A stretch of 39,760 nt of DNA. It comes from Macrostomum lignano. Its lineage: Eukaryota. The stretch is from assembly GCA_002269645.1 (NCBI GenBank), contig NIVC01004642.1, forward strand, positions 1-39,760, written 5' to 3'. Position 1 is the stretch's first letter, and every line of letters starts with the position of its first letter. Of the stretch, positions 13,763 to 39,760 are shown piece by piece. The translations under genes were made by a program, and so were the position numbers. Below the pieces are notes generated by a model. The model saw nothing but the letters and a program-made list of their open reading frames with translations. It was not told the DNA's origin and ran no database searches.

Positions 13763-14003
13763 AAAAATATAAGAAACTCAGGATCGAAAATCTCGACTGA
13801 GAGAATTCTAATTCAGCATATATATTCAATTTATTTTGTATTCCAATTCAAGCTCAATATATATTGTATATCAACATAGTTCATATATATGCACGCTATA
13901 GATAAATTTTCAGTTCGAGTGTTTCTAACAGTATAGCTTAACAGTATAACAATATCGACCATAGACGATAATTAAATCTACAAACCTTCCTATCAATAAT
14001 AAT

Positions 14004-17707: not shown

Positions 17708-18159
17708 TCTTAAACGAGTCTTGTTGGATGTCAAGCTGAAGGCAAGATCGATAAAATCAATTAATAAACAGGTTGAAAAGTATTTCAGAGAAGAGACAAC
17801 AGCCAACCTCGGGTGAGTTGAATCCTGAGCAGAACCAGTGCAAGGCTCGGGTTAATATAGATAGTTTTCTAGTCGCTGAAAGGCTGCTCAATCATTCTGT
17901 TGAGTCAATTGGTTCAAAGGTGACAGCACTTGGATCAGGCCACAGAGCTCGGGTGTCCCTTATCTCAGACTCAGACAATCTTAAGCTCTCCACACGTTCT
18001 CTCCCTTGATTGAGGTCGTTATCAAGACTGTGTGTGGTTTATCTCTAACAGCTAAAAGAAATTTCAAATCAATTTCAAAAACAAAAATATGCAACCATAG
18101 TGTTCTGGTAGTTAAAAGGCCACAAGTGGTCGTCACTGGTGGGAAACACACTCTATAGC

Positions 18160-19412
18160 GGTCATTGTGAAACACACACATCTATGATTATTGCGAAACA
18201 CACACATTGCGGTCATTGTGAAACAAACAAATTTGCGGTCATTGTGAAACACATACATCTGTGGGCATTGTGAAACACACACATCTGCAGTCATTGTGAA
18301 ACACACAAATTTGCGGTCATTGCGAAACACATACATCTGCGGTCATTGTGAAACACACACACATCTGCAGTCATTGTGAAACACACATCTGCAGTCATTG
18401 TGAAACACACACATCTGTGGGCATTGTGAAACACACATCTGCAGTCATTGTGAAACACACACATCTGCAGTCATTGTGAAACACACATCTGCAGTCATTG
18501 TGAAACACACACATCTGTGGGCATTGTGAAACACACACATCTGTGGGCATTGTGAAACACACACATCTGTGGGCATTGTGAAACACACATCTGCAGTCAT
18601 TGTGAAACACACATCTGCAGTCATTGTGAAACACACAGAAACACACATCTGCAGTCATTGTGAGACACACAGAAACACACATCTGCAGTCATTGTGAGAC
18701 ACACAGAAACACACATCTGCAGTCATTGTGAAACACACAGAAACACACATCTGCAGTCATTGTGAGACACACAGAAACACACATCTGCAGTCATTGTGAA
18801 ACACACAGAAACACACATCTGCAGTCATTGTGAAACACACAGAAACACACATCTGCAGTCATTGTGAAACACACAGAAACACACATCTGCAGTCATTGTG
18901 AGACACACAGAAACACACATCTGCAGTCATTGTGAGACACACATTTGCGGTCATTGTGAAACACACATCTGCAGTCATTGTGAAACACATCTGCAGTCAT
19001 TGTGAGACACACACATTTGCGGTCATTGTGAAACACACATCTGCAGTCATTGTGAAGCACACACATCTGCAGTCATTGTGAGACACACACATTTGCGTCA
19101 TTGTGAAACACACATCTGCAGTCATTGTGAGACACACACATTTGCGGTCATTGTGAAACACACATCTGCAGTCATTGTGAAACACACATCTGCAGTCATT
19201 GTGAAACACACACATCTGCAGTAATTGTGAAACACACATTTGCGGTCATTGTGAAACACACACATCTGCAGTCATTGTGAAACACACATCTGCTGTCATT
19301 GTGAAACACACACATCTGCAGTAATTGTGAGACACACATCTGCAGTAATTGTGAGACACACATCTGCAGTAATTGTGAAACACACACATCTGCTGTCATT
19401 GTGAAACACACA
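18160..19412. repeat. About 1.25 kb of 20-24 bp minisatellite (GTCATTGTGAAACAC(AC)nATCTGCA) with a 32-bp sub-array at about 18630-18930
   Basis: Tandem units with variable CA number; lies between the plakin 3' end and the arylsulfatase start. Confidence 0.97.
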
Positions 19413-19871
19413 CATACACGCGGCAATCGCGTGACACTAGATTATTCCTGCATAAAATTTAACCGACAGCAAACAGTAAAATAATTTTTTTTCAATTAAA
19501 AAATGAACAAATAAACGGTTCAAACATGCTCTGCAGAGGCCTATTGAGTGGCACTAAAAATGGTTTACTGAGGCAGCTCCGAAACGGTCAAATTGCATGA
19601 ACTAGTCTAGTAGGAATCTAGAGTCTAGTGGAAAAAAGAACCCACTATCGAATCCCTTTTATCCCAAATAAAAAAGCCATTTCCCTTACGGGCCATGAAA
19701 CGCGCAGATATTTGGCAAAAAATTAAAATCATTGATTACACAGAACGCTTGGTGGATGAATGATCGATGCATGCTGCAGTCAATATACATGTATATTTTT
19801 ATTAAAGAGAAAAATAGACAAAATTTTTATTGATTTTTTTTCTTTAACAAAACAAGAAATTTCTGATATTC

Positions 19872-19877
19872 TTTATT
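19872..19877 (-). terminator. Candidate polyadenylation signal of the plakin-like gene
   Basis: AATAAA on the minus strand, about 140 nt past TGA at 20013. Confidence 0.4.
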
Positions 19878-20012: not shown

Positions 20013-20830
20013 TCACTGCTTGGTCGCCTCATCGGCAGCAGCGGCCGCCGCGGCTTCCTGAAGCTGACGCTGGCGCTGTCTGGAAAGAGACTTCGCCTTC
20101 GCTCGCTGGAAGACAGAGTCCGCGTCGTCAACGACAGGGCCAGTAGATGTAGCCGTTGAAGTAGCTGACGTCATAGCAGTAGCAAACGTCGTTGAAGTAG
20201 CCGACGTCGTTGAAGTAGCCGACGTCGTTGAAGTAGCCGACGTCGTTGAAATAGCCGACGCCATAGCAGTAGCCGAAGTCGTTGAAGTAGTCCATACCGC
20301 TTCCGGCAACGTTGACACTATCGGCAAACCGGACGTCGCCGCTATCGAAATTGACGCAGTCGCTGTCGTCATGGTCTTTGTTGTCGCCGTTGTCGTTGCC
20401 TTTGTCAAAGCAGACGTCGTCGTCGTCGTCGGTGTCGCGATGTCGCGGTGTTCGACACCGGTGGGCATCGGTGGTCCGAGTCGCACGGCTGGAATGTCGC
20501 GGCCTTTCAGGTCTGGCACCAGACGCGTCACTTTGGTCAGCTCGGCAACCATGCGTGCCTCCTCAGCCGCCTGCTTCGCCGCCGCTTCTTCCCCCTCGTT
20601 GTCTCTATCGCTAGACGTCGATGTTAGCGCAGTCGGCTGATGCGAGCTGGCGCTCTGGTTGCGACTGCGCCAGCGGAACATGGCAGCGGGGCTGCGCAGC
20701 CCGCTGGACCCAGCGTCGGCGGAGCCAACAAGGAAAGGGCTGGACACTACGGTCGGCGACAGAGACAGCGACAAGGACAACGCGGCGGCGGCTGACGCCG
20801 AAGCGGTGTCAGTTGAAGCCTCCGCCAAGC
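20013..20830 (-). CDS. Plakin-like gene terminal exon (Ala/Thr/Ser-rich, TSTTSA repeats)
   Basis: Acceptor ttcccag, phase 1, matches the giant-exon donor; 818 nt = 2 + 272 codons to TGA. Confidence 0.8.
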
Positions 20831-23800
20831 CTGGGAATGCAGAATGTGTGCATTATGACCTTACTTTCCAGAAGAGGAAAGATGAGATGATATATGAAAA
20901 AAGAGAAAAGAGGCGAGAGAGGAAATTAGATGGCAGACACGAGAAAGCTGAGAAGAGACAGAAACTTTGTTCGGCACTTGGAGCCCGATACTGAACCTCG
21001 AATACGCACCATAAAAAGCCTTATTTTGCGCAGACATCAAACAGCAAATCGAATCCAGTAGCCAAGTTTTCGGCTAAAATTATTAGAACTAAAAACATCG
21101 TACTAATAGTAGCATGGTGCACAATTAAATAAAACAACAGGCTCACTCGGTAAGTCGTCCCGATGCCCGCAGCCGGTGTCCACCATCGGGCCGTCATGAA
21201 TCCGGATGCCATCTGTCTGGATGTAGTGCGCGCGCTGGCACGGCTCGTCGAATCGCATCCGTTCCGGGTGCTCCGGGTGGTAAGTGAAGTAGGAGCCGGA
21301 GTCGTCGCCGAGCGCCGTCGCGTCTAAAGGCCGGTAGAGCGACACCGTGTCGCGACAAGCGATCGAGCGGGACAGCGGCTTATCGAGCCGAACAGAAGGG
21401 ACCACCACCTCTGGGTCGGTCTGGCACTCTCGGCTGCTAATCTCAATGTCCGAATTTGAGAGCGCATCTAGACAGGCTTTCACGCTGGCTACGGCGGTCT
21501 CTGTGTGAGTCTGCGACTCCACTTCGCAGCATTCTGGACCTGTTGAGGTGCGCATCTCGCTTTGCACAGCGTCCACAGCCCAGAGCGAACCAGTGTCCGT
21601 AGTTTTCATTGGCTGCGACTTCACGTGGCCAAGGAGAGAGTCTGGTTGATGCCACGAGCTTGATACAGCTTGCTGGACAGCTTCAGACGACAAAGTGGTC
21701 CCAGCCTGACATACGGCATCGGTCGTGGGCAGAAGCTCATTATCAACTTGACTGTCGGCATGCCTTGTCTGCTTAGCAACAACTTTGATGGGCTCACTAT
21801 CAGCATCTAGCTTGACCGAGACGCACCGCTGCTCAGACGATAGTTCGTAAATACTTCCAGTATTTGCTAACTTCAAACTTGAACTCGCATTGACACTCGC
21901 CTGGCTGAAACTCCACGTACTCACACCGGCTGACGATCCCGTCTCGCAGTGTCCTAACTGAGTGTGGTCGGTCTGATTGCAACTGTCCGAATATTTCAGG
22001 CTGGGTTCGCGGCTTGCATGAAGTCTTTCGGTAATGATAAACTGCTCAGGTTCCTCAATGTCCAGTGTCTGCGTCTCGCACTCCTTTACATTAATTCCAA
22101 GGTGTTGACTGCCTGTCTGATTCAAATTAGGCAGCCTAGCAACAACGAAATCGAGTGTACCCGGTTGAATCTCTGCTCTGGTGTTGACTGTCTCTTCAGC
22201 TTTGCCTGGAGGACGCGCAACAACCACAGCGACGCTGCTGTTGGATCGCGTAAGACTCCACTCGCCGAGAATAGCGGAGTCTGAGAAGTCAGACCAGCTG
22301 CGACCAGCCTGACATTCGTTGTCCTCTCTGTCAAAGAAAAAGCTGCATCCAGACTGGCATTCGAAGTTCTCGAATTCTGAATGGCTGCAGCCAGCCTGGC
22401 ATTCGACATTTTCTCTACCCAGGAAGAAGCTGCAACCAGCTTGGCATTCGAAATCTTCTGAATTCAAGCCTCCGGTACCGGCCTGACATTCACTATTAGT
22501 TATCTCAAAGGTACCAGAGCCCATCTGATTTTCAGCCTCTTGCCTATCAAAGAAGAAGCTGCAGCCGGATTGACAAACTGCGTCGACCTGACATTCGACC
22601 CGTTTCGAATCCAACACCGGGCCCATGTTGACCGAGACGTACTGCTGCTGAGATGGGACATCGTGAATGCTTCCTGTCTCGGCTAGCTGGAGCCGACTGT
22701 TCGCTCTGACAGCATCTTCAGCGAAGCTCCAACAGCTCACACCAACCGATAACTCGATTTCGCGTGTGAAAAACCTCGAGTCAGTTTGTTCGCTGCCATC
22801 CGAATAACTGATTTTAAGGCTCTGAGTGGGTTGTCTTTTCTCAATAATAACTTCCTGATCCGTTTGCGTTCCGAATTCTTTTAAAGGTGTCACCAAGTGC
22901 ATGCTACCTGTGTGAGCCACTGCGGCAACTCTTGCCACGGCGGAACTGTCACTTGAAAGCCTCTGCGTACGAGCAATTGCTTCGGCAGTTTGTCCAAAGC
23001 ATAGAGCCAGAACTTCGTCAGTCGCTGGACGAATCAGGACGGAGTCGTCTGAATACTTGCTCCAATGTAAGGTGCTCCATTCGCTGGGAACGGCTGAGTC
23101 AGTTAGTTCCCGACTGTCTGCTTTGCCAGTCTGGCAGTTTGAGTTTATCATCTCAATATCAATGCTTCCGCAGGCTCTGACGACCTCCTCGCGGGTGTCT
23201 ATTTTGGCTGAGACAGATTGCGGCTCACTAAGAACCTTATGCAGACTACCGGTCTCAACTAACGCAATTGAATTTGAGCACACGTTTGCCTGACTGAAGT
23301 CCGTGAAAGCATTTGTACCCACCGAAACGATTGCATCGCTGAGCAGGAAGCCACTGCAACCAGCTTGAACCTCGGCATTGAGGCGGCTAAACAGACTGCC
23401 ATCAGTTTGAATTTGGCTGCTGTAAGTCTCGGCAACTTTTTTTATCTCCGTTAGTGCTTCTGGTGCGTCCGTCTGGATTGCCATGTCAGTAAGTACAACC
23501 TGCAAGTGCTGACTGCCTGTGTGGCTCAGTTCTGGCAGTTTGGCAATGGCTGAATCAGTCTGCACAGTCTGTACGGCCTCGGATGATGCGTCACTGGAAT
23601 TGGTGACCCAGTGGGCAGCAGTATCCGCTAGCACCGGGTGCACGCACATGGAGGCTAAAGCTGACACAGGCGATGGTGGGCGCTGCTGTTTTGCCAATGA
23701 CTCGCTCCACTCTCTTGAAATAAGCTGCTCCTTGAACTGAAATTGACTACAGCCAACTTGACAGTCGCTCTCCACTCTGTCAAAGTAGCTGTAACCGGTC

Positions 23801-26800
23801 TGACAGTCGCTCTCCATTCTGTCAAAGTAGCTGCAACCGGTCTGAGAGTCGCTCTCCGTTCTGTAAAAGTAGCTGCAACCGGTCTGACAATCGCTCTCCG
23901 CTCTGTCAAAGTAGCTGTAACCGGTCTGACAGTCACTCTCCGCTCTGTCAAAGTAGCTGTAACCGGTCTGACAGTCGCTCTCCGCTCTGTCAAAGTAGCT
24001 GTAACCGGTCTGACAATCGCTCTCCGTTCTGTCAAAGTAGCTGCAACCGGTCTGACAGTCGCTCTCCGTTCTGTCAAAGTAGCTGTATCCGGTCTGACAA
24101 TCGCTCTCCGTTCTGTCAAAGTAGCTGTAACCGGTCTGACAATCGCTCTCCGCTCTGTCAAAGTAGCTGTAACCGGTCTGACAATCGCTCTCCGCTCTGT
24201 CAAAGTAGCTGCAACCGGTCTGACAGTCGCTCTCCGCTCTGTCAAAGTAGCTGCAACCGGTCTGACAGTCGCTCTCCGCTCTGTCAAAGTAGCTGTAACC
24301 GGTCTGACAATCGCTCTCCGTTCTGTCAAAGTAGCTGCAACCGGTCTGACAGTCGCTCTCCGCTCTGTCAAAGTAGCTGTAACCGGTCTGACAATCGCTC
24401 TCCGTTCTGTCAAAGTAGCTGTATCCGGTCTGACAATCGCTCTCCGTTCTGTCAAAGTAGCTGCAACCGGTCTGACAGTCGCTCTCCGCTCTGTCAAAGT
24501 AGCTGTAACCGGTCTGACAATCGCTCTCCGTTCTGTCAAAGTAGCTGTAACCGGTCTGACAATCGCTCTCCGTTCTGTCAAAGTAGCTGTAACCAGCCTG
24601 GCACTCACTATCTGCTTTGTCGAAAATACTGAATCCAGCTTGGCATTCAGTATGAATTAAGTCGAAGTAGCCGGGCCCAATCTGACACCCTGTCTGATTA
24701 AATGAGAAGCTGCTGCAGCCCATCTGAGTCACAGCCTCATTAGTCCCGCAGATAGCCTCAATGGCGACATTGTGAACTCCAACATCGTAGCAGCTAGCTG
24801 TGTCTGTTAATAGAGACTGCGCGTTCGCCTGACCATCAACACCATCCCATGCACTGATCCCGGCGCATGACTCTGCATCCAGCCGGTCGAAGTAACTGTT
24901 ACCAGACTGCTCGCATTCGTCCAGCCGATCAAAGTCGCTGGCCCCTGCTTGTTGGCAGAAATTCACACCGTGGAATGCGCTTGCTCCGGACTGATGACCT
25001 TGATCCGTGGTGTGGAATGCGCTCGCTCCAGATTGATGACCTTGATCCGTGGTGTGGAATGCGCTCGCTCCAGATTGATGACCTTGATCTGTGTTGTGGA
25101 ACGAGCTTGCTCCAGATTGATGACCTTGATCTGTGGTGTGGAATGCGCTCGCTCCAGATTGATGACCTTGATCCATGTTGTGGAACGTACTTGCTCCAGA
25201 TTGATGACCTTGATCTGTGCTTTGGAACGCACTTGCTCCGGACTGATGACCTTGATCCGTGGTGTGGAACGCGCTTGCTCCGGACTGATGACCTTGATCC
25301 GTGGTGTGGAATGCGCTTGCTCCAGATTGATGACCTTGATCCGTGTTCTGGAATGCGCTTGCTCCAGATTGATGACCTTGATCCGTGTTGTGGAATGCGC
25401 TCGCTCCAGATTGATGACCTTGATCCGTGTTGTGGAATGCGCTTGCTCCGGACTGATGACCTTGATCCGTGTTCTGGAATGCGCTTGCTCCAGATTGATG
25501 ACCTTGATCCGTGTTGTGGAATGCGCTCGCTCCAGATTGATGACCTTGATCCGTGTTGTGGAATGCGCTTGCTCCAGATTGATGACCTTGATCCGTGGTG
25601 TGGAACGCACTGCACCCAACCTGCTGACCTTGATTCGTCTTGTCGAACGCGCTGCACCCAACCTGCTGACCATAATCGACCGATTCAAAAGCGCTGGCTC
25701 CTGTTTGAACACCGAATTCAAACGCAAAGTGAAGATGCGTCCGCACGCCGGCAATCGCGGTGGCTGGAGCGCAGATCACGTGACCTATAGCCGGCTCCGG
25801 ACAAGTCTGCTCCCCGCGACTGAAACTCTCTGCGCCCGCCCAGACCGCTATGTCCTTGCTAGTGATGCCTGTGTTCACGCTGTCGTGAGCAGCTTCAGGT
25901 GGCGAAGTCTGCGCACTGGCGCAGTCGAACTGCGGTCCAATCTGCACAGAAATATCACTAGCGTCTTCAAGTGCCAGGCGACATTGAACGCCGCTGTCGG
26001 AAAGCCCTTCGATACGCAAATCCGCCAGCGGACTGTCAACGAACTGATCAACTGTAAGCAGCTTTCCGGCCGCTGCGCACCTGGTCTCGACTATGTCGGG
26101 TTGGTAGCGCATCGACGAGTCGACGCGACGCTCGTCGCGATCCTGCCGTCTCCAACGAGTCAGATCGAGTGTGTCGCTAGCCTGATCAGCAACGGACTCT
26201 GAATGCTTCGTTGCGACAACCAACACGCTGGCGGTGGGGTTTTTAGCCGTTAGCATCGTTTGGCTCGCCTCGGAGAGGCTCGGCGGCCGGGCTCGAACCT
26301 CGGACTGACGGAGACCGACAGGAGCGGTTGTCTGCGCCGCCTGGTGTCTGAGGACTGGCGGCTGCCGCATTGACTGCTGCGGCTGTGGTGGTGGCGGCGG
26401 TGGTTGTGGCTGCATCACTGCACTCGTCTTAACTAAAGCATTTGCTGTCGCCACTGTCGAGGCTCCGACGACAACGCCGCTGACGACAAAGTCCACAGAC
26501 GGCTTCGACTCGGCTGGTTTCAAATCCAGGTGGCCAAGTTTAGCTGTGGTTGTCATGGAGACCTCAGCGAGGACTATCGGTTCAGTGGTATCGTAATCGT
26601 CTGACGGAGCTTTGGCTGCGGATTTGAGGCTGCGTTGCAGCAGCTCGAGACGTTCGCTGCTGCATTGTAGAAGTCTGAGTTTTAATTGGCGAGTTACGAA
26701 TCGAGATACATTATAACTATGCTGATTTGATATACTAATGATATGGTATACTACTGATATGGCATACTACTAATGAGATACTACTGATATCATTTACTAA

Positions 26801-29800
26801 TGATATGGTATACTACTGATATGATATACCAATGATACTACTAATATTATATACCGTACTTCTGATTTGATAGTGATAGTTTGATCTCACTCGGACTCCA
26901 AGTCGCCGTTCGCGCGCCAGTTTAAGGCAGTGCCGACTTTTCTAGTTTCTGTGGCTGAGCAGCAGCACAGTTCCTCTGGACTGCCGCAGCCGCAGCAGCA
27001 GCAACAGCAGGCGCAGTCTGAACCGGCACGCTGGAACTCCGCCCAGCTGGTCAGGTGCTGCCACAGCTTCGACACCAGCGTGTGCAGGCGGACTAACTCG
27101 GTGGTTGACAGCCTGTATGGATCGTTGCCTGCGGTACGATTGTTAACAATGGGCTATGGGTGTACATCATATCATTCATTTCTTATATAGATCTTGTATA
27201 CGGAATCAACAATCAGCTGTAAAAAACGGTACCAAAATAACAATAAGAACTTGCTTACGTAGGCTTGACTTCACGCGCCCCTTGCGTGCTATCTCGCTCG
27301 CCGCTTCTGAAAAATTAATTAGTTTCTTAGACTAATTGGCCCATCTGTGGCCCGCCTTACCCGACCCCCGATTTCTCTCCAGCCACCCCACTCCACATCA
27401 ACCCCTTTTCAGTTCATTATAATTGGCCAAGTCAGCCTGTCTTCCCCGACCCCCGATTTTTCTCCAGCCACTCCACTCCGCATCAACCCATTTTCAGTTC
27501 ATTCTAATTGCCCATGGCAGCCTGTCTTCCCCGACCCCCGATTTCTCTCCAGCCACTCCACTCCACATCAACCCCTTTTCAGTTCATTCTAATTGGCCAA
27601 GTCAGCCTGTCTTCCCCGACCCCCGATTTCTCTCCAGCCACTCCACTCCACATCAACCCCTTTTCAGTTCATTCTAATTGGCCAAGTCAGCCTGTCTTAC
27701 CCGACCCCCGATTTCTCTCCAGCCACTCCACTCCACATCAACCCCTTTTCAGTTCATTCTAATTGGCCAAGTCAGCCTGTCCTACCCGACCCCCGATTTC
27801 TCTCCAGCCACTCCACTCCACATCAACCCCTTTCAGTTCATTCTAATTGGACATCGCAGCCTGTCTTACCCAGCCCCCCATTTTCCTCCAGCCACCCCAC
27901 TCCACATTAACCCTCTCTTTTTCATTCTAGTCGTCCGTCAGCCCGTTTTACCCAACCCCTTATTTCTCTCAATTGTAGAACACCAGTGAAACGCACCGTC
28001 GGTGCTAACAGTTCGGGCACGCAATTCAGCCAGCATAGTGGCCAGTTTTTGCCTAGCGCTGCCCTCAGAATCAGCGGCGGCCTCTTCGGCTAGCAGAGTT
28101 TGTTCTAGTAAATCGTAAAATTCCTCGGCGCAAGTTGGTTTAGAGACGGCAATTAGCTGGTGGATAAAGAAATCAGTGTAATATTATGGCTTCAGTTGGT
28201 TCAACGTGTATCCTGATTTTTAGATACATATGTAATGTACCTCACTACTCATGCAATCGTATAATCGACAAACTAACCGACTGTTTGTCCAGCAGCCCGG
28301 TGAACAGTTGCGCAATATGTGCCACCGTGTCTCGCTTTAGCTTGGCAATTAACGCAGTCCACTGATCCGATAACTGACGCTTGAGTCTACAGATTGACGT
28401 GAGTTTAAGTAAATATATATATAAAACTATATTGGTTAACACCATGGGTTGATTCCCATGGTCGGGCTTCACAAACTAGTAAGTTAGCACTGCATTTTAG
28501 TAATAATATTAATAATTATTATATTCGCATAAGGGTGGTGGCGCAACGACTTCGACAACTGAACACATTACTGCACGCAGGCACGAAGTCACACACACGC
28601 TCACACAGGGTGCACAGCGGCCCTGACTTTCCAATCGTCAGGCATGTGCACTCTCCGTGCCTTGGGCGGGGGTTAGACCTCATGCATGGGTGAGAACCTT
28701 ACGGAAGTCCTGAACTATGCATGAAATAGTACCCGAGGATCTGACGCGCGAGAGTCAGACACGTTTACCGCTGACCTGCTGTGTCCCCCAACATCGCATC
28801 TTCCTGAGAGACAGTCCGTCCGTCTTTTTATATTTTTTAATTAGAGGCAGGGGGGGTGTGTGCACCCTGGCGCACTTTAAGCGACATAGGCACACAACTG
28901 GCGAGAGGCATTACTGCCCATTCCGCCGACTCCCCTGAGCAGGCATACAAGCGCGCGGATACGTACGCAGGCACACACTCACACAGGAGTGTACAGCGGC
29001 CCTAACTTTATTTTATCGTTAGGCATGTACACTTCACTGCGCCTTGGGGGGTTGGCTCTCAAGGCCGTTAATTGCACGAGCAGAGCCAAGCCGAGATTCC
29101 AATTCAGCCCCAAATTAATGTGACTGCACTTGGAATCGAGCCTGGGTCGCTGGCACACCAGAGCCTGCGCTAGACCGCTGGGCTACGCCCAAATTAGTCC
29201 AAATTAATGTGACTGCACTTGGAATCGAGCCTGGGTCGCTGGCACACCAAAGCCTGCGCTAGACCGCTGGGCTACGCCCCCCGTCCGTCCGTCCGTCTTA
29301 CCTAACGGCTCTATCAATAGAGCTAACATCTCGCGGCGGAATCCAGACTGTTATAGACGGCAGCGTCACCTCGTTGCCATCAAGCAGACGGACTCGCCAC
29401 TGCAGTCGATCGGAGTTGTCTAGAATGGTCAGCTCTTGGCCTTGCGCTACGACGAACTGCATAAGGTAGAGTTTATAAACTGTTAACCTTTAACCTTTAA
29501 TATATAGCAAGGTTCTCTATATTAAAGTCTCGTGTGAGCTGCTTTGTTTAGTTGAATAATCGTAGCTTGATTTACCAAAAACCGGATAGTTCTAAAGACA
29601 GAAATATACTCAAGACATACTACTCATGGAGGTGAAGCGACACGCGAGTAAGTATTGATATTAGCGAGTAGATACATACAGCATCAAAATTTTTTAACAG
29701 ATGCTTTCCATCGGTATGTAGCGTTATAGCCTAGACACCAGGGTGTTTTGTTAATTCAAAATTATTCTAGAAATATATAAAATATAGAGACAAACATGTT

Positions 29801-30436
29801 GAAAAGAACCTCCAGAAGTTACGGTTGCATCAGGACGGAACACTCGGTTTCGATGGACAATTTATTTGAAGGCCTAGATAGGGTGGAGCCCAACAGCCGA
29901 CACGGTGGAGCCTAACAAGAGACAGGGTGGAGAGCCTAACAAGAGACACGGTGGAGCCCAACAACAGACACGGTGGAGCCCAACAACAGACTCGGTGGAG
30001 CCCAATAATAAACCAGATATTGGCGACCCTTAGGGTTGCGACCTCCTGCACTTAAAACTCGCGCGTACATGTTACGTTACTGTCAGCGGTAACAGAGTAA
30101 CTCAGTAAGTCTCACCTCGGGCGTTTCGTACAGGCACGCGCAGATACCGCGAAGTGGAGCGCTTTTGTCAGACAGTTTTCCAACTGGCGTTGGACACCGA
30201 CTGCTAATTGGTACAATGGAGTGCGCGGCGGACACCAGATGGTCCACGGCTGCCCATTCGCTTAGGCAGTGCTTCAGGGAGTCCTGGAGACGCGAGTGCA
30301 AGAGTTTAGTTCAGTAAATATTTAAGAGACGGTAAGTTGAGTTAGTTGGTCGGTCACTCAGTTAGTTAGTTAGTCAGTTAGTTAGTTACGAGTAGTTAGT
30401 TAGTTAGTTACTTAGTTAGCTAGGTAGTTAGTTAGG

Positions 30437-30499
<63 letters not shown>

Positions 30500-30596
30500 G
30501 CAGTTAGTTAGTTAGTTATTCAGTCAGTTAGCTAGTTAGTTAGTTAGTTAGTTAGTTATTAGTTAGTTAGTTAGTTAGTTATTAGTTAGTTAGTTA

Positions 30597-30639
<43 letters not shown>

Positions 30640-33600
30640 TTAGTTAGTTAGTTAGTTAGTTAGGTAGTTAGTTAGTTGAACTCAAGACTCACAGTGGCCG
30701 TTGTGAGTAGTCGCTTAGTCCGTTCCGGATGATGAAGATGGAACAGGCACTCCAGCTGGCGCGAAGCGTGTGAAAAACTGCGCCCCATTCGGCCACCAGC
30801 GTCGTGGCATTCAACGTGGAAAGAGTTGTAGTCGGCCGCGTTTCTCGAGTGCAGGCGCAGCAGCACGGAGAGCTGGTCCAGCCACTGCCAGCAGCGCTGA
30901 GCGGAGCCGGCAAGCGGCTTGCGGACTGTCGAATCCAAGGAGCCTGACGACGGCTCGGATGGAGGACCGCTGGTGGACAGCCGGTGCGCCTCTGATGTCA
31001 CGGCTGCGGCAGAGGACTGCGGATGGGCGATCGATATTGATGGGGGCTGATCGGCCGCCATTGTACAGCTTCCCTCTCTCCCTGCCCCTCTCTCCCTACC
31101 CCTCTCTCCTGCCCCTCTCTCCCTGCCCCTCTCTCCCTGCCCCTCTCCCCTGCCCCTCTCCCCCTGCCCCTCTCTCCCTGCCCCTTTCTCCTGCCCCTCT
31201 CTCCCTGCCCCTCTCTCCCTGTCCCTCTCTCCCTGCCCCTCTTTCCCTGCCCCTCTTTCCCTGCCCCTCTTTCCCTGCCCCTCTTTCCCTGCCCCTCTCT
31301 CCCTGCCCCTCTTTCCCTGCCCCTCTTTCCCTGCCCCTCTTTCCCTGCCCCTCTCTCCCTACCCCTCTTTCCCTGCCCCTCTCTCCCTACCCCTCTCTCC
31401 CTGCCCCTCTCTCCCTGCCCCCCTCTCCCTACCCCTTTCTCCTTGACCCTCTCTCCCTGTCCCTCTCTCCTTGACCCTCTCTCCCTGTCCCTCTCTCCTT
31501 GACCCTCTCTCCCTGTCCCTCTCTCCTTGACCCTCTCCCCTTGCCCTTCTATCACAGCCCCTCTTCCTCTGCCTCTCTCTCCCTTCCTTTCTCTTTCAGC
31601 CCCTGCCTCGCTCCTCCTCTCTTTCCCTGCCTTTAAGCAAATTTTAATACTATAATTCTCTGTGCTGATTAATAATATTGCTTCGAGTTGCTGAACGAGT
31701 GCATGCGCACTTCAAGCTGTGAGCTCGGGTATTTACCAATAACTATGATAGCTATATAGCGGTTCTCCTTGCCTGCATGCAGACCATTCGCCCTACCGAT
31801 GCTCAAACTTGCTCACCGCCTCTCAAAATCATAGTTCTTATATTCGCGCTGTATAGTTAATTAAATACAGCACTTGGCTGCAGTGGATGGAATTCTTTAG
31901 CTTAGTCAACTAGGAGATTGTATTGGCGCCCCCAATACTAGTGCAGAGCCTATACTACGAGTACTGTAGTCCATGTTTGTGTAAATTAATAAACAGCAAG
32001 CTGAGGCAGTCGTAGGCTTAGGGATTTTGTTTTCATTAGCACACTAAGAATGTTGAATAGCTATTCTTCGACGAGACAGCAATACTTAACTGTGTTCATT
32101 TATAGCTCTCTTTTGAAAATCTGATTTCAAATCTCAGCATTGCCGCTATTTTCGAGAATATCGATCTTTTGTGCCTTTGATGATTGTATAGGCTGTACTG
32201 GTAGCCAAGTTAAAAGGCAGGGAGGGGCAGGGAGAGAGGGACAGGGAGAGAGGGACAGGGAGAGATGGGTAGGGAGAGAGGGACAGGGAGAGAGGGGTAG
32301 GGAGAGAGGGGCAGGGAAAGAGGGGTAGGGAGAGAGGGGCAGGGAAAGAGGGGCAGGGAGAGAGGGGCAGGGAAAGAGGGCAGGGAAAGAGGGGCAGGGA
32401 AAGAGGGGCAGGGAAAGAGGGGCAGGGAAAGAGGGGTAGGGAGAGAGGGACAGGGAGAGAGGGGCAGGGAGAGAGGGGCAGGGAGAAAGAGGCAGAGAGA
32501 GAGAGAAGCAGGGAGAGGGCCAAGGAGGGATGGGCAGGGATAGAGTGAGAGAACAGGAGATAAGACGGGAGACAAGAGAAGGGAGAGGGAAGTCGTGAGA
32601 ATAGAGCAAGGTATACATGTAGAAAGGAGTTATTAAGAAAAGGGTAGAGAGATCCGAATACGGAGGTGGAGACAAGGAGGCGTATAAGGAAGGAAACTGA
32701 ATGCATAAATACATGTAGGAGTATTAGGATGCTAAAGTGAGTAAATTTCCCGATAAATTTAGACAGATGCAACACAACAGAACAGATAACTCTCTTACGC
32801 CAAAGGTGTCCTCCAAGCTGGCAATCTTGGCTATGAAGTCAAGCGAAGCGATGTTGTCTCCGACTCTTCGTCCTGCGACGCTGCACTGCTCTCTAGCTGG
32901 GCGAGACAGGTCCTGTTATGTAGCAACAATTAATTTAATAAACAGCACGGGGCTTAGGCTTGGGCTTCCTGAGAGGGAAGAGCCATGTACTTTTCTTAAA
33001 TGGGGGACGCTGTTAACTTTAGCTGCCCTACTAGTGTAGCATTCTGGTCACAATTACCACCCGATTTGACTCTTGGAGCAGTTTGAGTTACCCATGACAT
33101 CAGGTTTAACTTTATCGCCTTTATTCGACCTATAGCCTTACAACAGCGCTGACGACCATTCTATCGATTCCACTGACTCTTGAGCACATGGGTGTACAGC
33201 GGCCTAGACTTTCTAATCGTCAGGACTCTTAATTCATGTCTTGTATGTTGGCTCTCATAGACAACTGCAATGGAATGAGGCTACACAAGGAGCTATAGAT
33301 GCTGCTATTGCTAGGTAGTACATTTTAAACCGATTGCAGTGTCAAAATGTGTGCATTAAATGCATAGTCTATGGCCGCTCCATATCTCGCGCAAATCAAA
33401 CAGCGTGAATTGAATGAAAAAAGCGTGCATTAAATGCTTAGTCTATGGTCGAGACTCCAGATTGAATCGTTATAACAATACTGCTCGATACTTGGTTTTT
33501 AGCGTTTAAATGTCTTGGCCACGAGTGCGCGAAGCCTATTATACATTTAGTATCTGCGGTATGCTCTAAGAGAACGCCATAGATAACGCCATAAAAGGTT

Positions 33601-34275
33601 TTCGCCATAGACAAATTCCATGTATGACGTCCGGTTTCTCGAGAGCTCGATCCCAGAGATCGAGTTAAGGGTGGGGGTTAATATGAAAACTACTGGAAAC
33701 CTCTCTGCAGCTGGACTGCCCCTATAAAAGCTTTGTCATTCAAACTCACGCCACTAGCAATACGGACAAGCTCATCGCGGATGCCGCGCTGACGAGATCT
33801 CTCGTATTCGATGGAGCAACGATTAGAGCCAAGTGGCGGATTGTGCACTATGGCGTGATTGGCTTCCAGCCAGTGCAAGAACTGTGTCTCAACCTGCTGT
33901 CGACTGTTCATCTGCCTTCGATTGGCAGGTTGTCGGTTGGTTCTTGTAGATTGCTCGATACGGTTAGCTATACACTCGTTAACGCTGAGGTATAGCTACA
34001 AGCTTTACTAATAATAATTCAAGCTTGGTAGCTCGTACTTAAATATTTAGGGCTACAAAAGAGAATGTACAGATAGAAATTAATTGAATGGAGCTCAGTG
34101 GGCGGCCTCGCGATTGCTCTCGTTTTTGCATTTCAATTCATTCTCTCTCTATATATCTCTTCTCTACTCTCCTTACGAGTAGCTGCCAGGGGGGCTCGGC
34201 AGGTCATCAGGCCCGCAAATAGAACCGCTTAATCTTTTCTTTAAATCTAGCAGCAGATCTTGACTTGAATAGCAG
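20013..34275 (-). CDS. Plakin-domain protein (dystonin/MACF/desmoplakin-type spectrin repeats plus SH3) with a giant repetitive exon; at least 11 exons, about 2600 aa or more, 5' end not defined
   Basis: Exons 34275-34177, 33984-33750, ~32896-32799, 31016-30693, 30283-30116, 29456-29302, 28386-28278, 28156-27997, 27128-26891, 26659-21147, 20830-20013. Phases agree at every junction except the 33750/32896 one. Plakin-like sequence: TQFLHWLE..., QRCWQWLDQLSVLLRLHSRNAADYNSFHVEC, HSIVPISSR...LRGICACLYETPE/FVVAQGQELTILDNSDRLQWRVRLLDGNEVTLPSITVWIPPRDVSSID (plakin SH3). Confidence 0.85.
21147..26659 (-). CDS. Giant 5513-nt exon of the plakin-like gene (the 1817-aa ORF)
   Basis: Acceptor aatgcag (phase 2, in frame with the upstream exon), donor CCGA|gtgag (phase 1); open throughout; contains two 42-bp coding arrays. 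Confidence 0.9.
23745..24600 (-). repeat. 42-bp coding tandem array, about 20 x FDR[TA]ESDCQTG[YC]SY
   Basis: Counted from the ORF translation; unit = 14 codons. Confidence 0.98.
24970..25660 (-). repeat. 42-bp coding tandem array, about 15 x F[HQ][NT]TDQGHQSGASA plus degenerate flanks
   Basis: Counted from the ORF translation. Confidence 0.98.
26891..27128 (-). CDS. Plakin-like gene exon with a poly-Cys cluster
   Basis: GNDPYRLSTTELVRLHTLVSKLWQHLTSWAEFQRAGSDCACCCCCCGCGSPEELCCC...; phase 1 to 2, both ends match neighbouring exons. Confidence 0.8.
27355..27910. repeat. 85-bp intronic minisatellite, about 6.5 copies
   Basis: Identical ORF starts at 27423, 27508, 27593 and 27678 show the 85-bp period. 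Confidence 0.97.
27997..28156 (-). CDS. Plakin-like gene exon (LIAVSKPTCAEEFYDLLEQTLL...STD)
   Basis: ccaccag / G|gtgcgt; 160 nt, phase 0 to 1. Confidence 0.8.
28278..28386 (-). CDS. Plakin-like gene exon (LKRQLSDQWTALIAKLKRDTVAHIAQLF...)
   Basis: ctgtag / TCG|gttagt; 109 nt, phase 2 to 0; helix following the SH3. Confidence 0.82.
28560..28720 (-). mobile_element. Diverged SINE body fragment
   Basis: CACACAGGGTGCACAGCGGCCCTGACTTT...AGGCATGTGCAC...GCCTTGGG matches the body of the 17090 and 28870 SINEs. A weaker fragment is at about 33185-33260. Confidence 0.6.
28870..29280 (-). mobile_element. tRNA-derived SINE with a tandemly duplicated tRNA-like head
   Basis: Reverse complement of the 17090 element; the head (A and B boxes) occurs twice, at about 29111-29190 and 29200-29280. 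Confidence 0.85.
29302..29456 (-). CDS. Plakin SH3 exon (FVVAQGQELTILDNSDRLQWRVRLLDGNEVTLPSITVWIPPRDVSSIDRAV); missing from the ORF track
   Basis: ttatgcag / AG|gtaag; pattern matches the plakin SH3 (L.DNS.R..W.V....G.E..VPS.....PP). Confidence 0.88.
29881..30005. repeat. About 22-bp minisatellite (GGTGGAGCCCAACAACAGACAC), about 6 copies
   Basis: Tandem degenerate units in an intron. Confidence 0.85.
30116..30283 (-). CDS. Plakin-like gene exon (DSLKHCLSEW...HSIVPISSR...RGICACLYETPE)
   Basis: ctccag / GAG|gtgag; 168 nt, phase 0-0. Confidence 0.85.
30361..30677. repeat. (TTAG)n microsatellite
   Basis: Imperfect tetranucleotide run in an intron. Confidence 0.97.
30693..31016 (-). CDS. Plakin-like gene exon (QRCWQWLDQLSVLLRLHSRNAADYNSFHVECHD)
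   Basis: ccgcag / ACT|gtgagt; 324 nt, phase 0-0; resembles plakin QTQWSWLLQL...ENTAYFEFF. Confidence 0.8.
31072..31545. repeat. 14-bp pyrimidine-rich minisatellite (CCCTGCCCCTCTCT)n
   Basis: Tandem units; reverse complement of the array at 32218-32500. Confidence 0.95.
32218..32500. repeat. 14-bp purine-rich minisatellite (AGAGAGGGGCAGGG)n, inverted relative to 31072-31545
   Basis: Tandem units with G3/G4 runs. Confidence 0.95.
32799..32896 (-). CDS. Plakin-like gene exon (...CSVAGRRVGDNIASLDFIAKIASLEDTFG); exact acceptor uncertain
   Basis: Donor GGC|gtaag at phase 0. There are several close AGs; the first gives phase 1, later ones give phase 0. Confidence 0.6.
33750..33984 (-). CDS. Plakin-like gene exon (...VETQFLHWLEANHAIVHNPPLGSNRCSIEYERSRQRGIRDELVRIASG)
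   Basis: cctcag / GGC|gtgagt; 235 nt, phase 2 to 0; resembles a plakin spectrin repeat (ELMWLNE...). Confidence 0.7.
34177..34275 (-). CDS. Probable upstream plakin-like gene exon (CYSSQDLLLDLKKRLSGSICGPDDLPSPPGSY)
   Basis: Long pyrimidine tract plus ctatag; TC|gtaagg; 99 nt, phase 2-2, compatible with the next exon. Confidence 0.55.
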
Positions 34276-34939
34276 CTATAGGGCCAACGCGTGCGATGGG
34301 ATGAGAGACAGAAAAACGGCCGTGCACTCAAACTCTCTTATTTTTGTTCAGCTTTTGAGCAGCGCTTGTGTGGGTGAAAGAAGGTCTGACAGTTTAAACA
34401 GTGCCAGGGTCAACAACCGAGTGTTTAGCTACGCGAATTCTTTTCTTTTTGCCCTCGCAGTGACTTGAATTTTTTAGTTGACCTAAACCTACACCTATAT
34501 CTACTGATGTGCATGCATAGTTTTTTTTATTCAGCGCAAGACAAAGAGCTAGATTCGGTCTTTTTCAAAAGAGTAAACAAGACTAACATTTTGTGCTGTA
34601 TCTACAGATGCAATTTCGTAAATGCACATGCATGCGCATATTTTATACCGTATCCACTTTTTATATAATTTAAACAAAAACTCGACTGTTTTTCAAAAAG
34701 TAAACAAGGCTTTGTTTGTGCTTGTGCTTGCTGGATTATGAAGGCTTCAGCCTCTCTTATGTAGGCTTAGTTTTTTGGCTTTTGTGTTTGCATTGTTGTT
34801 CTCTCTGAAGTATTACTGGCTACTTAAAATATACTTGAAGATAATACAAACTAGCTATTAGAGAACGCAGGAATTATATCACTCGATCAGTTACTTGTTT
34901 TGGGTAATAAAATAGGCTTTTAGTTAAATGAAAGTTGAA

Positions 34940-35465
34940 TGAGTGGCCTAGGTAATAAAATAGGATCTCTGTTAAATGATTTGGTCTGCTAAGATAATAA
35001 AATAGGGTCTCCGTTGAATGATTTTGTTAGCCTGGGTAATAAAATAGGGTCTCCGTTGAATGATTTTGTTAGCCTGGGTAATAAAATAGGGTCTCCGTTG
35101 AATGATTTGGTTAGCCTGGGTAATAAAATAGGGTCTCCGTTGAATGATTTTGTTAGCCTGGGTAATAAAATAGGGTCTCCGTTGAATGATTTGGTTAGCC
35201 TGGGTAATGAAAGAGACTCTCCTTTGAATGATTTTGTTAGCCTGGGTAATAAAATAGGATCTCTGTTAAATGATTTGGTCAGCTAAGATAATAAAATAGG
35301 GTCTCCGTTGAATGATTTTGTTAGCCTGGGTAATAAAATAGGGTCTCCGTTGAATGATTTGGTTAGCCTGGGTAATGAAAGAGACTCTCTTTTGAATGAT
35401 TTTGTTAGCCTGGGTAATAAAATAGGGTCTCCGTTAATTGAATGATTTGGGTGGCCTGGGTAATA
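34940..35465. repeat. 42-bp minisatellite (GGTAATAAAATAGGGTCTCCGTTGAATGATTTTGTTAGCCTG), about 12 copies
   Basis: Tandem units; source of the NDFVSLGNKIGSPL ORF at 35014-35286. Confidence 0.97.
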
Positions 35466-35775
35466 AAATGGGCAAGCTTATATAATAATTTTTTAAAGTT
35501 GGCTGACGTTGGTTTGATAAGACTGTCAAACTGAACTCTCATAGAACATGCTTAGAAAAGATAGATTCAATGCTTCAACAAAATCAAACAAGACGACAAA
35601 TCCTATTTCGATGTGTGATTGGTTGGATTGACAGATCAGCCAACAAGAATTCCTGCACAGCCAATAACTGAGCACTATAGATAAGCTATATGTTTTTGCT
35701 AACATGTAAAGCTGAATGGATAAAGTTAAACCGCCAACTTTCGAAACAACACATTCACTGCTTATAGGCACGCTG

Positions 35776-36578
35776 GTAAGTCATTACAGTTAATTAAGTT
35801 CTACAGCAATAATTTGCTGTAGTTTTTTAACCTTGTTACGAGTCTGCGCTAGCCTTATTATTAAATGAAATTATAAAATAAAATATTAAAGTCACACTTT
35901 GCATGGACGTCTTACGATTCAAACTCGTGTTTAAACTACGCTCGAAACTAACTTGTGACTGCGTTTAACGCACAGTTGGTTCATAATACTGCATAACTAT
36001 TAGGTTATTCCGATGCATCTCTTACTTAAAATACTTTGTTGTTGTTGGCTTACTGAAAACGGAATTGTACAGCCAAGATTGTACCATTTTAGATCGGTTT
36101 TTCGCCACTTTGAACTAGATAAACTAGTGTCGACTCTTTAAGGTTTACTAATCAATAGGACTTCTACAGCTGCAGTCCCAGTTCCCGGTTTGTTGCTAAA
36201 TCCGCTTTCCTTTTGATTAAAAGATTTCAAGACAGCTTTCAGTGCGCCTTGGTTTGGCATTGACTTTGGACAACTACATGCCAGGCGCTTGCTTCTATTT
36301 TTGGACAAACATCAGCTCAAGATTAATTAATTAACGCGTCTAAATCCGCGCGGTTTCGATTTGACAAGAGTCCTTGACAATGCGTGAAAATGAAAAAATG
36401 AGTCCGCTGTGCCTGCGTACAAGTATTTATCCATAAAGAACTAAATGCTTATATCCAGCATCTGCAATGTCACCACAACCATAATCATTAGGAATCACCA
36501 CACAATCATCTATTTGAACTTCAAAAACAAATCAATCCAGATGCTCAAGCTCCATACCAACTCACCTTTAATTCACAG
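35776..36578 (+). other. Probable 5' UTR intron of the GPCR gene
   Basis: Consensus donor CTG|GTAAGT at 35776 and acceptor ctttaattcacag ending at 36578, 19 nt before ATG 36598. Confidence 0.5.
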
Positions 36579-36597
36579 ATTTCACTCCAAAACTGCA

Positions 36598-38004
36598 ATG
36601 CTCGAGTCAGGCGGCAAGAATGACAGCAGCGATTTTGTCAAACAAGTGGCCGCCGCCATACGGAATTTCCGTGATTTCGAATCAATCTGTCTGGGCATCG
36701 GTCTCCGGTCCGTCTGCTTGCTGGGCATCGCTGGCAACTTGCTCACAGTTTTAGCCTTCGCTAAGCCCTGCAAGCGACGACAGCGCGGCGGCGTAGCTAG
36801 CGGAGATGGTTTAGGAGGCCGACCAGCAAGGCTGGAGAGCTCCATGTCGCAGTCGCTGATGGCCCTAGCCGTGTCGGATTTGTGCATCTGTTTGAGCTCG
36901 CTGCCGATCAGCAAGACCAGACCGCAATGCTCATCTTTGAGTCTACTTTATTCGCAGATTATTGGCCAGGCTTTCGCCAATATTTTCATGGCGTCTAGCG
37001 TGTGGCTCACTTTAACAATTACGATTTGCCGCTACCTGGCTGTCTGGCGGCCGCTGCAGTCGCGCAACTGGCTCAACCGGAGAAAACTGCGCGTCTCAAT
37101 TGGCATCGTTTTTGTCGCCGCTGTTGTGTTGCATTTCCCTGATTTCTTTAAATACGAAGCGACAATAGACAACTCGACTAATAGTAACTCGTGCTACACT
37201 TTCAACCGGAGGAAAGAGCTGGACCCTGGCATGAAATGGCACGCTTATATTTACTACTGGGCCACTATTTTGCTAGTAAACGCGTTGCCTCTACTCGGCA
37301 TCGTAGTCTGCAACATCCGCCTAATCCTGGCCTACAGGTCCAGTCTGCGACAGCGCAACCAGCTGAACGCCCAGAATGGCAATCAAGAAGATGCTACAAC
37401 GCGTTTGCAAGGCAACGGTGCCGGAGCTGTACAGCAGACAGACAATCTGACACCGTTATTGGTGACCGTCACCTTGCTGTTCCTTGTGCTAATCAGTCCA
37501 GGCCAGATACTCAACCTGCTGTGCAGGAGATACATTAGCAACACTTTGCTCAGCCGCCTCAAGAGCTCCGAATTCGCAGCGATTCGAACATATTATATAC
37601 TGCAGAGACTGACCAGTCTGACAACGCTAAGCCAGGTAACTGGCTGCGCTATTAACTTCATCTTCTACTGCCTGGTGTCCGCCTCGTTCCGCAAATCGCT
37701 GGCCGCCGCCCTGCGCTCGCTGGCAAGCGGACTCTGCTGCTGCTGCCGTCGTCGGGCTCGGAACGAAGCCGCAGGCAGCGGAACTTTCAGCAGAAGCGGC
37801 GTCGCCGTCGCCGTCGGACGCAGAGTTGAAACTGACAACTTCGAGTGCGTCGTCAGGCGCATTGCTGCCGACCAAGAAGTCAACGTCGATTATAATAGCG
37901 CCGTTCTCGATACCAGCGCGCGCACCGCAGTGACGGCGCTCATCGAGCCCGGCATGATCGGACAGGAGGCTGCTGAAAGCTTCGAACTCGACAAAGTGAA
38001 GTAG
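36598..38004 (+). CDS. Class A (rhodopsin-family) peptide GPCR, FMRFamide/myosuppressin/sex-peptide-receptor-like; intronless CDS, 468 aa
   Basis: Seven hydrophobic segments; GNLLTV (TM1), LAVSD (TM2), ICRYLAV (DRY variant), LHFP (TM4), LP (TM5), SP (TM6), NFIFYCLVSASFR (TM7/H8); CCCC palmitoylation cluster; N-glycan site NDS. ATG 36598 chosen because of the acceptor just upstream; the ORF itself is open from 36445. Confidence 0.93.
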   Translation: MLESGGKNDSSDFVKQVAAAIRNFRDFESICLGIGLRSVCLLGIAGNLLTVLAFAKPCKRRQRGGVASGDGLGGRPARLESSMSQSLMALAVSDLCICLSSLPISKTRPQCSSLSLLYSQIIGQAFANIFMASSVWLTLTITICRYLAVWRPLQSRNWLNRRKLRVSIGIVFVAAVVLHFPDFFKYEATIDNSTNSNSCYTFNRRKELDPGMKWHAYIYYWATILLVNALPLLGIVVCNIRLILAYRSSLRQRNQLNAQNGNQEDATTRLQGNGAGAVQQTDNLTPLLVTVTLLFLVLISPGQILNLLCRRYISNTLLSRLKSSEFAAIRTYYILQRLTSLTTLSQVTGCAINFIFYCLVSASFRKSLAAALRSLASGLCCCCRRRARNEAAGSGTFSRSGVAVAVGRRVETDNFECVVRRIAADQEVNVDYNSAVLDTSARTAVTALIEPGMIGQEAAESFELDKVK

Positions 38005-39512: not shown

Positions 39513-39760
39513 TCAGCGCGACCCGACGCCGGAATCGGATCCAAACAGACAGGCCAGTTTGTCGAATAGTTCCCGCAATTTCTGCACCTCGCGCGGATCA
39601 ATTCGTTCGAGATCTTCGGGACTGAATTTGAACGGATTGACGATCTGCAATTTGGTTGGTCGGCCGCGCGTCGACGAGGCGGCGGCGGCGGCCAACGCGG
39701 CGGCGGCTGCGGCGCCAGCTTGGCGGCCTCGAGCGGTTCGACCGCCTCGAGCTGTTGCCG
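39513..39760 (-). CDS. GC-rich coding segment, probably the last exon of an unidentified gene continuing past the window edge
   Basis: Open frame from the edge: ATARGGRTARGRQAGAAAAAALAAAAASSTRGRPTKLQIVNPFKFSPEDLERIDPREVQKLRELFDKLACLFGSDSGVGSR*. A second frame is also open; family not recognised. Confidence 0.5.
   Translation of the reverse strand, partial: ATARGGRTARGRQAGAAAAAALAAAAASSTRGRPTKLQIVNPFKFSPEDLERIDPREVQKLRELFDKLACLFGSDSGVGSR

Follow-up and report, generated by a model that had tools for sequence, protein, structure and literature searches.

Plakins are cytolinkers, a family marked by a conserved module set. Their plakin domain anchors them to proteins of membranes and junctions, and the SR5-SH3 unit, a spectrin repeat (SR) with an embedded SH3 domain, is its structural hallmark. 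To our knowledge, every characterised plakin combines the plakin domain with a rod and with an end that binds filaments or microtubules. Here we describe a minus-strand gene, running from about 33.9 to 19.8 kb in a 39,760-nt stretch of the Macrostomum lignano genome (contig NIVC01004642.1 of assembly GCA_002269645.1, analysed at its full length and called the window), which, with moderate confidence, we propose to encode a cytoplasmic scaffold of 2,607 amino acids (aa), made of a cut-down plakin head joined to a lineage-specific tail.

The SR4-SR5-SH3 structures of plectin (3PE0) and desmoplakin (3R6N) share with the M. lignano head the helix A motif QxxWxWxxQL, helix B, an SH3_10 domain placed within the repeat and the helix that follows, the M. 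lignano head having in addition a 33-aa Ser/Pro insert and a poly-Cys microsatellite. Canonical plakin domains extend from SR3 to SR9 (about 900-1,000 aa), whereas here ≈490 aa precede the tail and the flanks of the core have no detectable similarity. Periplakin and envoplakin begin with the plakin domain and have no N-terminal actin-binding domain, as in the M. lignano protein, but they go on with a coiled-coil rod and a linker or plakin-repeat domain, and such domains are absent from the M. lignano tail. The exon layout recalls the giant-exon isoforms VAB-10A and Shot, in which small plakin-domain exons are followed by one giant repeat-encoding exon, and the M. lignano transcript would end soon after the giant exon, as in vab-10A. 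On the contrary, the VAB-10A and Shot proteins have calponin-homology actin-binding domains, a full plakin domain and recognisable 38-aa plakin repeats, and the shot and vab-10 loci have alternative 3' exons for the spectrin rod, EF-hands and GAS2. Judged by SR5-SH3, the M. lignano protein would belong with the plakins, with a predicted architecture unusual among cytoskeletal linkers. A literature search for a Macrostomum plakin found none.

Gene structure

The gene model was built from public M. lignano proteins and from three-frame reading at each boundary. It comprises 11 exons on the minus strand, from 33911 to 20013 (Table 1), with all ten introns bounded by GT..AG and all junctions in phase. 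The spliced coding sequence (7,824 nt) encodes 2,607 aa, and its sole stop is the terminal TGA at 20013-20015. The motifs published for M. lignano are GT[G/A]AG for the cis-donor, CAG for the cis-acceptor and [T/C]TNCAG for the spliced-leader (SL) acceptor; eight of the ten donors of the plakin-like gene fit the first and nine of its acceptors the second. GC content ranges from 0.52 to 0.63 in the exons and from 0.30 to 0.43 in the introns without GC-rich satellites, with 0.30 in intron 9, between exons 9 and 10. Exon 8 keeps the reading frame intact whether it is included or skipped.

A preliminary description of this DNA had proposed that a 5.5-kb exon is followed by a Thr/Ala-rich last exon with a stop and a poly(A) signal; splice sites in matching phase, the TGA and the AATAAA signals were all confirmed. 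The junction between exons 10 and 11 has a GTGAGC donor, an acceptor with a long pyrimidine tract and CAG, matching phase, exon-like GC and poly(A) signals downstream. Were it left unused, the protein would end 14 codons later, with little change. The two exons account for 2,115 aa, of which the 272 aa of exon 11 are 19% Ala, 18% Thr and 15% Ser.

At the other end, the span proposed earlier (20013-34275) stood for 33911-20013, while 33912-34275 holds no supported coding exon. The first ATG lies at 33911, and no ATG was found in the open frame upstream of it. A GTAAGG donor at 34178 could close a 5' untranslated exon; a candidate upstream exon (34337-34178) matches the phase of an acceptor at 33983, but having no ATG it was rejected as coding sequence and would be untranslated at most. 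From 33,911 to 36,445 the DNA is AT-rich (GC 0.38) and no credible coding stretch was seen, nor were calponin-homology, earlier spectrin-repeat, rod, EF-hand, GAS2 or plakin-repeat exons of this gene found within the window. Since this non-coding stretch, a gene for a G protein-coupled receptor (GPCR) and other genes flank the locus, the protein most likely starts with the ATG at 33911, and no further plakin modules within the window belong to it. The claim that no plakin exons follow downstream agrees with this picture: the next minus-strand gene encodes an arylsulfatase, and no spectrin, EF-hand, GAS2 or plakin-repeat exon is visible.

Two public models cover part of the locus. A 350-aa UniRef entry, an M. 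lignano 'SH3_10 domain-containing protein', aligns to successive exons of the window with a single mismatched residue, and A0A1I8GJC3 (562 aa, same UniRef cluster) is identical to the window-encoded protein over 460 residues, the first 460 aa, its locus being the window locus or an identical copy. Both models end in the CTG/CTGC microsatellite of exon 9, which is read as poly-Cys (CACCCCCCGCG...CCC); a shared end point of this kind suggests that the older genome version has a gap in its assembly. A0A1I8GJC3 begins with 101 aa that map antisense to the GPCR coding sequence, including the first transmembrane helix, and that join an acceptor located 6 nt upstream of the first ATG (33911); this N-terminus is probably a gene-prediction artefact.

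A diverged plakin head

In the spliced protein, Pfam SH3_10 (PF17902) was found at residues 247-296 (E 4.8e-10; 39.8 bits against a gathering cut-off of 22.8). A phmmer search of PDB sequences retrieved only plectin 3PE0 (E 2e-9) and desmoplakin 3R6N (E 3e-8), both over residues 129-325, which correspond to SR5 helix A, helix B, the SH3 domain and the start of helix C. The SH3_10 domain is thus embedded in SR5, as expected of a member of the plakin family.

The remainder of a plakin domain is missing, with only ≈200 of the ≈490 head residues plakin-like by homology and no complete SR3-SR9 array before the giant exon. Also absent is the N-terminal calponin-homology actin-binding domain of spectraplakins, none being present between 33.9 kb and the GPCR gene at 36.4 kb. 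Judged from its sequence, the head is a plakin domain that has diverged strongly and is cut down to roughly three repeats, and only its SR5-SH3 core is demonstrably plakin-like. The plakin domain named in the preliminary description therefore survives as a plakin-type SR/SH3 module, and not as an entire domain or one with an actin-binding domain upstream.

A repetitive tail of two ages

That the giant exon encodes protein is certain. Its open frame spans 1,842 codons, with a probability of about 1e-24 that the 1,252 non-array codons would be open by chance, and the non-array part of the exon (2.6 kb) has 31-50 stops in each of the other five frames.

The tail contains arrays of 14-aa units, all with the pattern xGxSxFx7Q, and three super-repeats (U1-U3). 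Arrays A and B, separated by a short spacer, have no indels and keep the frame, and the DNA identity between their copies is 90-94%. Among the distinct copy variants, 6 of 13 and 4 of 9 are synonymous, against neutral expectations of 0.21 and 0.17 (P about 0.03-0.05). Array B is rich in Tyr, Phe, Cys and acidic residues (19% aromatic, 9% Cys, net charge -41). The identity among U1-U3 is about 31% (z = 15-27 against shuffles), and each of them bears two L-x-L-(A)-x-TGS-x-H motifs. As these super-repeats have diverged to such an extent and are still open, the tail appears to have been held as coding sequence for a long time. By its sequence, the tail is an old diverged duplication combined with very young array expansions, and not simply low complexity. 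The earlier figure of about 2100 aa of low-complexity repeat was right in length, while the term suits only part of the tail, given the super-repeats and the 14-aa unit.

Ser, Gly, Gln, Thr and Ala are abundant in the tail, with many Pro, and the aliphatic content varies from <2% (array B) to about 20%. AlphaFold2 (AF2), applied to ten array B units with a four-row alignment of array segments from the window, gave an all-beta model with two strands per unit (predicted local distance difference test, pLDDT, 67; predicted template modelling score, pTM, 0.58). A stacked beta-hairpin fold of the arrays is plausible on this model, which together with the composition would argue against a coiled-coil rod.

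Searches for relatives of the tail were negative. Pfam returned no family for exon 10 (E<=1), for exon 11 or for the super-repeats (E<=10), and no genuine homologue came up among 5.8 billion proteins in word-indexed searches, whether the query was the entire giant exon or the 872 aa outside its arrays. The lone match in the word-indexed searches, a low-complexity bacterial protein, was rejected as spurious. The 870 aa outside the arrays also had no match at E<=0.001 when 1.84 billion cluster representatives were scanned in full with HMMER, and in the PDB no related structure was retrieved with profiles built on the super-repeat and on the TGS motif. These results fit an orphan, lineage-specific tail that may constitute a new C-terminal module, as had been proposed. 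The companion proposal, that the protein lacks rod, plakin-repeat, EF-hand and GAS2 modules, is borne out by the empty Pfam result for exons 10-11 and by the absence of such modules from the gene territory. The C-terminal spectrin rod, EF-hands and GAS2/GAR of spectraplakins are likewise missing, a stop and AATAAA following exon 11.

Alternative readings of the locus

That head and tail form one gene is likely from the signals at the exon 9-10 junction. Exon 9 ends in a consensus donor (CGA/GTGAGA), and the in-frame stop after exon 9 is the TGA within that donor; in-phase CAG acceptors of the giant exon lie 216 nt downstream, with the frame open for 39 codons before its first ATG. None of these candidate acceptors fits the SL acceptor motif, and the ATG at the SL end would be out of frame at each. 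The sole poly(A)-like hexamer in the gap, ATTAAA at 26686, lies 12 nt before the acceptor and thus leaves no room for a cleavage site. The claim that the plakin exons splice in phase into the giant exon holds for the donor and acceptor signals and for the phase, the single transcript, the least secure part of the model, being inferred from splice signals only.

Several points count against a single scaffold protein. About 15% of M. lignano genes are in SL-resolved operons, with a spacing of about 100 bp after repeat removal, and the exon 9-10 gap (216 nt, 116 nt of it tandem repeat) fits an operon spacer equally well. Both public models stop before the exon 9-10 junction. Residues 1-148 and 300-515, searched alone against PDB sequences, matched no plakin or spectrin structure, and the AF2 model of the head, computed without alignment, was unreliable (pLDDT 37), with helices throughout except for the SH3 strands. 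On the side of the tail, only 2 of 5 AF2 models of array B reached a pLDDT of 67, and Foldseek of the model against the PDB gave no significant match (all E>1), its weak list consisting mostly of beta-solenoids. Finally, the role as a membrane- or junction-tethered scaffold is pure inference.

The alternative that survives best, rather unlikely in our view, is a pair of genes, either resolved from an operon by SL trans-splicing or merely adjacent. A plakin-fragment protein of ≈490 aa would then end at the TGA right after exon 9, and a separate orphan repeat protein would have its start codon at 26556, perhaps downstream of a trans-splice acceptor around 26661-26674. The size and repeat content of the gap, the immediate in-frame stop, the 1,817-codon open reading frame (ORF) opened by that ATG, the ATTAAA hexamer and the failure of public models to cross the gap are all in line with it. 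However, the stop belongs to a GTGAG donor of the kind used by 8 of the 10 donors of the gene, and a donor would not be expected at the end of a terminal exon; the acceptors keep the phase and do not fit the SL motif, the frame is open upstream of the ATG, and the hexamer leaves no space for cleavage.

Another explanation, which we consider improbable, is that the giant exon corresponds by position to the large exon that encodes the plakin repeats in spectraplakin genes (shot, vab-10A). Its L-x-L-A-x-TGS-x-H motifs and 14-aa units would then be plakin repeats too diverged to be recognised, and the protein a degenerate plakin of the plectin/VAB-10A type, without a new module. In Drosophila shot, one plakin-repeat exon of 10,497 nt is found where the plakin-like sequence ends, and in C. 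elegans vab-10A a large specific exon follows the common 5' exons. The M. lignano exon occupies the same relative position, directly after the plakin-domain exons, and its 'AETGSIHDV' superficially resembles the 'AATGGIIDP' core of plakin repeats. The content of the exon is nevertheless not homologous. The 38-aa plakin repeats were retrieved neither by Pfam (no Plectin repeat in the exon at E<=1 or in the units at E<=10), nor by the PDB profiles, in which super-repeat and TGS motif matched no plakin-repeat structure, nor by a custom hidden Markov model (HMM) built from PDB chains of desmoplakin, envoplakin and plectin, which gave no match to the whole tail at maximum sensitivity. The TGS motif was also considered as a degenerate plakin repeat and rejected, its seven segments scoring at most 2.4 bits with this HMM, below shuffled sequences (up to 4.1 bits) and far below the control (99 bits). 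Moreover, the periods of the tail are 14 aa and ≈200 aa against 38 aa for the plakin repeat.

A decaying or chimeric spectraplakin duplicate, or an assembly or annotation artefact with inflated arrays and no function as a single protein, could be suspected from the repeat-rich and partly duplicated M. lignano genome, the high identity of arrays A and B, the poly-Cys reading of the CTG microsatellite and the strong divergence of the head, but is very improbable given 2,607 codons in 11 exons with no frameshift or stop and all splice sites intact, arrays without indels and with an excess of synonymous variants, super-repeats open at 31% identity and an identical 460-aa head in an independent public assembly.

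Proposed protein and function

Under the single-gene scaffold that we prefer, the head of ≈490 residues would consist of roughly one helical repeat, SR5 with the embedded SH3, and about one further helical repeat, with no actin-binding domain. The tail would run from a Pro/Gln-rich linker through the arrays of 14-residue units and the three ancient ≈200-aa super-repeats to the Ala/Thr/Ser-rich end. The array units (xGxSxFx7Q) are predicted to stack as beta hairpins bearing His (array A) or Tyr/Phe/Cys and acidic residues (array B). By analogy with plakin domains, the SR5-SH3 head may anchor the protein to a complex at a membrane or junction, while the place of the rod and of the filament-binding modules would be taken by a multivalent tail, which might be beta-rich and able to self-associate or be cross-linked, or might itself bind filaments. 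A multivalent self-associating or polymer-binding design is suggested because the tail has many near-identical units, rich in residues suited to metal, disulfide or aromatic contacts, together with three larger repeats. Short tandem units modelled as stacked hairpins are also known in curli CsgA, bactofilin and pentapeptide-repeat proteins, which head the non-significant Foldseek list; with all E>1, and with a 14-aa period and an xGxSxFx7Q pattern that differ from theirs, the resemblance is one of kind only. As for the docking unit, one report (10.1101/681072) implicates the SR5-SH3 region in signalling/mechanotransduction at C. elegans hemidesmosomes.

A bolder possibility, to which we give little credence, is that the tail is a new intracellular structural module, the stacked His/Cys/Tyr hairpins self-assembling or cross-linking through metal, disulfide or aromatic contacts to form a stiff material in the cytoplasm, which SR5-SH3 would tether to the membrane. 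In Macrostomum, candidate sites would be the reinforced anchor cells found in the adhesive organs, or some other hard structure inside cells.

Neighbouring genes and repeats

Downstream, on the same strand, the arylsulfatase gene has at least 4 exons, including its own signal-peptide first exon, and matches Pfam Sulfatase (E 4e-18 and 7e-24) and Sulfatase_C (E 2e-27); one of its introns carries a GC-rich tandem array, several frames of which are open. The upstream neighbour, on the opposite strand and transcribed divergently from the plakin-like gene, is an ORF of 519 aa without introns that encodes a rhodopsin-family GPCR (7tm_1, E 4e-20; also Srw-like). A GC-rich ORF entering from the window edge ends in TGA (39513-39515) without a donor; no Pfam family was found in it, and it is probably the last coding exon of a different gene.

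Repeats are numerous within and around the gene. Intron 2 holds two arrays of one 14-bp unit (CCCTCTCTCCCTGC) in opposite orientation, with inverted arms of up to 227 nt, 85-94% complementarity and a separation of ≈700-1,000 nt. Satellites or simple repeats lie in intron 3, in the intron between exons 7 and 8 and upstream of exon 1; a long degenerate tandem array occupies the 2-kb spacer between the 3' end of the gene and the sulfatase gene, and (CAGA)n-type microsatellites of up to ≈500 nt are found further downstream. An element of ≈200-300 nt occurs in opposite orientation in intron 5 and in the first intron of the sulfatase gene; its translated stretches are nearly identical (PSGLAQAL.CQRPRLDSKCSHINLG...), ARAGORN detected no tRNA in it, and it looks like a short interspersed repeat. 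An ORF fragment resembling the C-terminal part of a retroelement integrase core (...WSNGLAERAVQTVK...) was noticed by eye only, the Pfam result not being significant.

Table 1. Coordinates of the plakin-like gene, its tail repeats and the surrounding features in the window (TRF, Tandem Repeats Finder).
Feature	Position	Strand	Description
Exon 1	33750-33911	-	from first ATG (MNSRQQ...); identical in public models P0002, P0004; donor GTGAGT; helical; probably part of the spectrin repeat before SR5
Exon 2	32799-32912	-	tblastn of public model P0002; sites ACAG/ and /GTAAGA, phase 0
Exon 3	30693-31016	-	Ser/Pro-rich linker, then SR5-like helix A (QRCWQWLDQL); aligns to 3PE0 and 3R6N from residue 129
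Exon 4	30116-30283	-	SR5-like helix B and SH3 start; tblastn, splice sites, structure alignment
Exon 5	29302-29456	-	plakin-type SH3 (SH3_10, PF17902); exon alone E 4e-9, above gathering score
Exon 6	28278-28386	-	post-SH3 helix (SR5 helix C); desmoplakin alignment to residue 325; junction with exon 7 agrees with P0004
Exon 7	27997-28156	-	helical; in public models P0003, P0004; no PDB match
Exon 8	27259-27306	-	48-nt cassette-type, EAASEIARKGRVKSSL; in P0003, P0004; sites TTTTTCAG/ and /GTAAGC
Exon 9	26891-27128	-	helical segment, then CTG microsatellite as poly-Cys; donor CGA/GTGAGA
Exon 10 (giant)	21147-26674	-	5,528 nt, model residues 494-2335; acceptor CTCAG/ phase 2, donor GTGAGC phase 1
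Exon 11	20013-20830	-	Ala/Thr/Ser-rich terminal exon, 18-bp x7.6 array (TRF), ends TGA; acceptor phase 1; GC 0.61
Three AATAAA poly(A) signals	19798-19877 (at 19877, 19831, 19803)	-	136-215 nt past the stop
Pro/Gln-rich unique stretch	tail start	-	about 320 aa
Array A	24970-25653	-	42-bp unit, ≈16-20 copies, no indels (TRF); encodes SGASAFHNTDQGHQ; rich in His, Gln, Gly, 10% His
Array B	23759-24594	-	42-bp unit, ≈20-23 copies, 94% matches (TRF); encodes TGYSYFDR(A/T)ESDCQ
Super-repeat U1	23110-23742	-	≈210 aa; local alignment z = 15 against shuffles, with U2 and with U3
Super-repeat U2	22555-23127	-	≈190 aa; z = 27 with U3
Array C	22300-22593	-	about 7 old diverged copies, 14-15-aa unit (ECQAGCSFF...); read from translation
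Super-repeat U3	21700-22317	-	≈205 aa; local alignments against U1, U2
Unique stretch	after U3, before exon 11	-	184 aa
CTG/CTGC microsatellite of exon 9	26960-27010	-	exact end point of both public models
N-terminal 101 aa of A0A1I8GJC3	36590-36894	-	antisense to GPCR gene
14-bp arrays, intron 2	31072-31584 and 32222-32545		
(AGTT)80, intron 3	30360-30677		
Satellite between exons 7 and 8	27356-27970		85-bp unit x7.3
Satellite upstream of exon 1	34946-35469		42-bp unit x12.4
Interspersed element, intron 5	28980-29280	-	
Interspersed element, sulfatase first intron	17100-17460	+	
Degenerate tandem array, 2-kb spacer	18100-19450		
(CAGA)n-type microsatellites	8860-9390 and 13690-13800		
Arylsulfatase gene	14220-17851	-	
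GC-rich array, arylsulfatase intron	≈16.0-16.56 kb		
Integrase-like ORF fragment	12534-12866	+	
GPCR ORF	36445-38004	+	
ORF at window edge	39513-39760	-	

Significance

Lineage-specific repeat proteins are frequent in the repeat-rich M. lignano genome, which limits the importance of the finding, as does a head-tail junction that is predicted from splice signals. For the public annotation, the gene model brings a correction: the UniProt models are fragments ending in a microsatellite, one of them with a GPCR-antisense N-terminus. If the doubtful stiff-material reading of the tail held, M. lignano would have a non-filament alternative to the system of plakins and intermediate filaments. If the scaffold that we favour is correct, the SR5-SH3 unit would be reusable as a stand-alone docking module, and the M. 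lignano protein would offer a natural test case for what an isolated SR5-SH3 core does.

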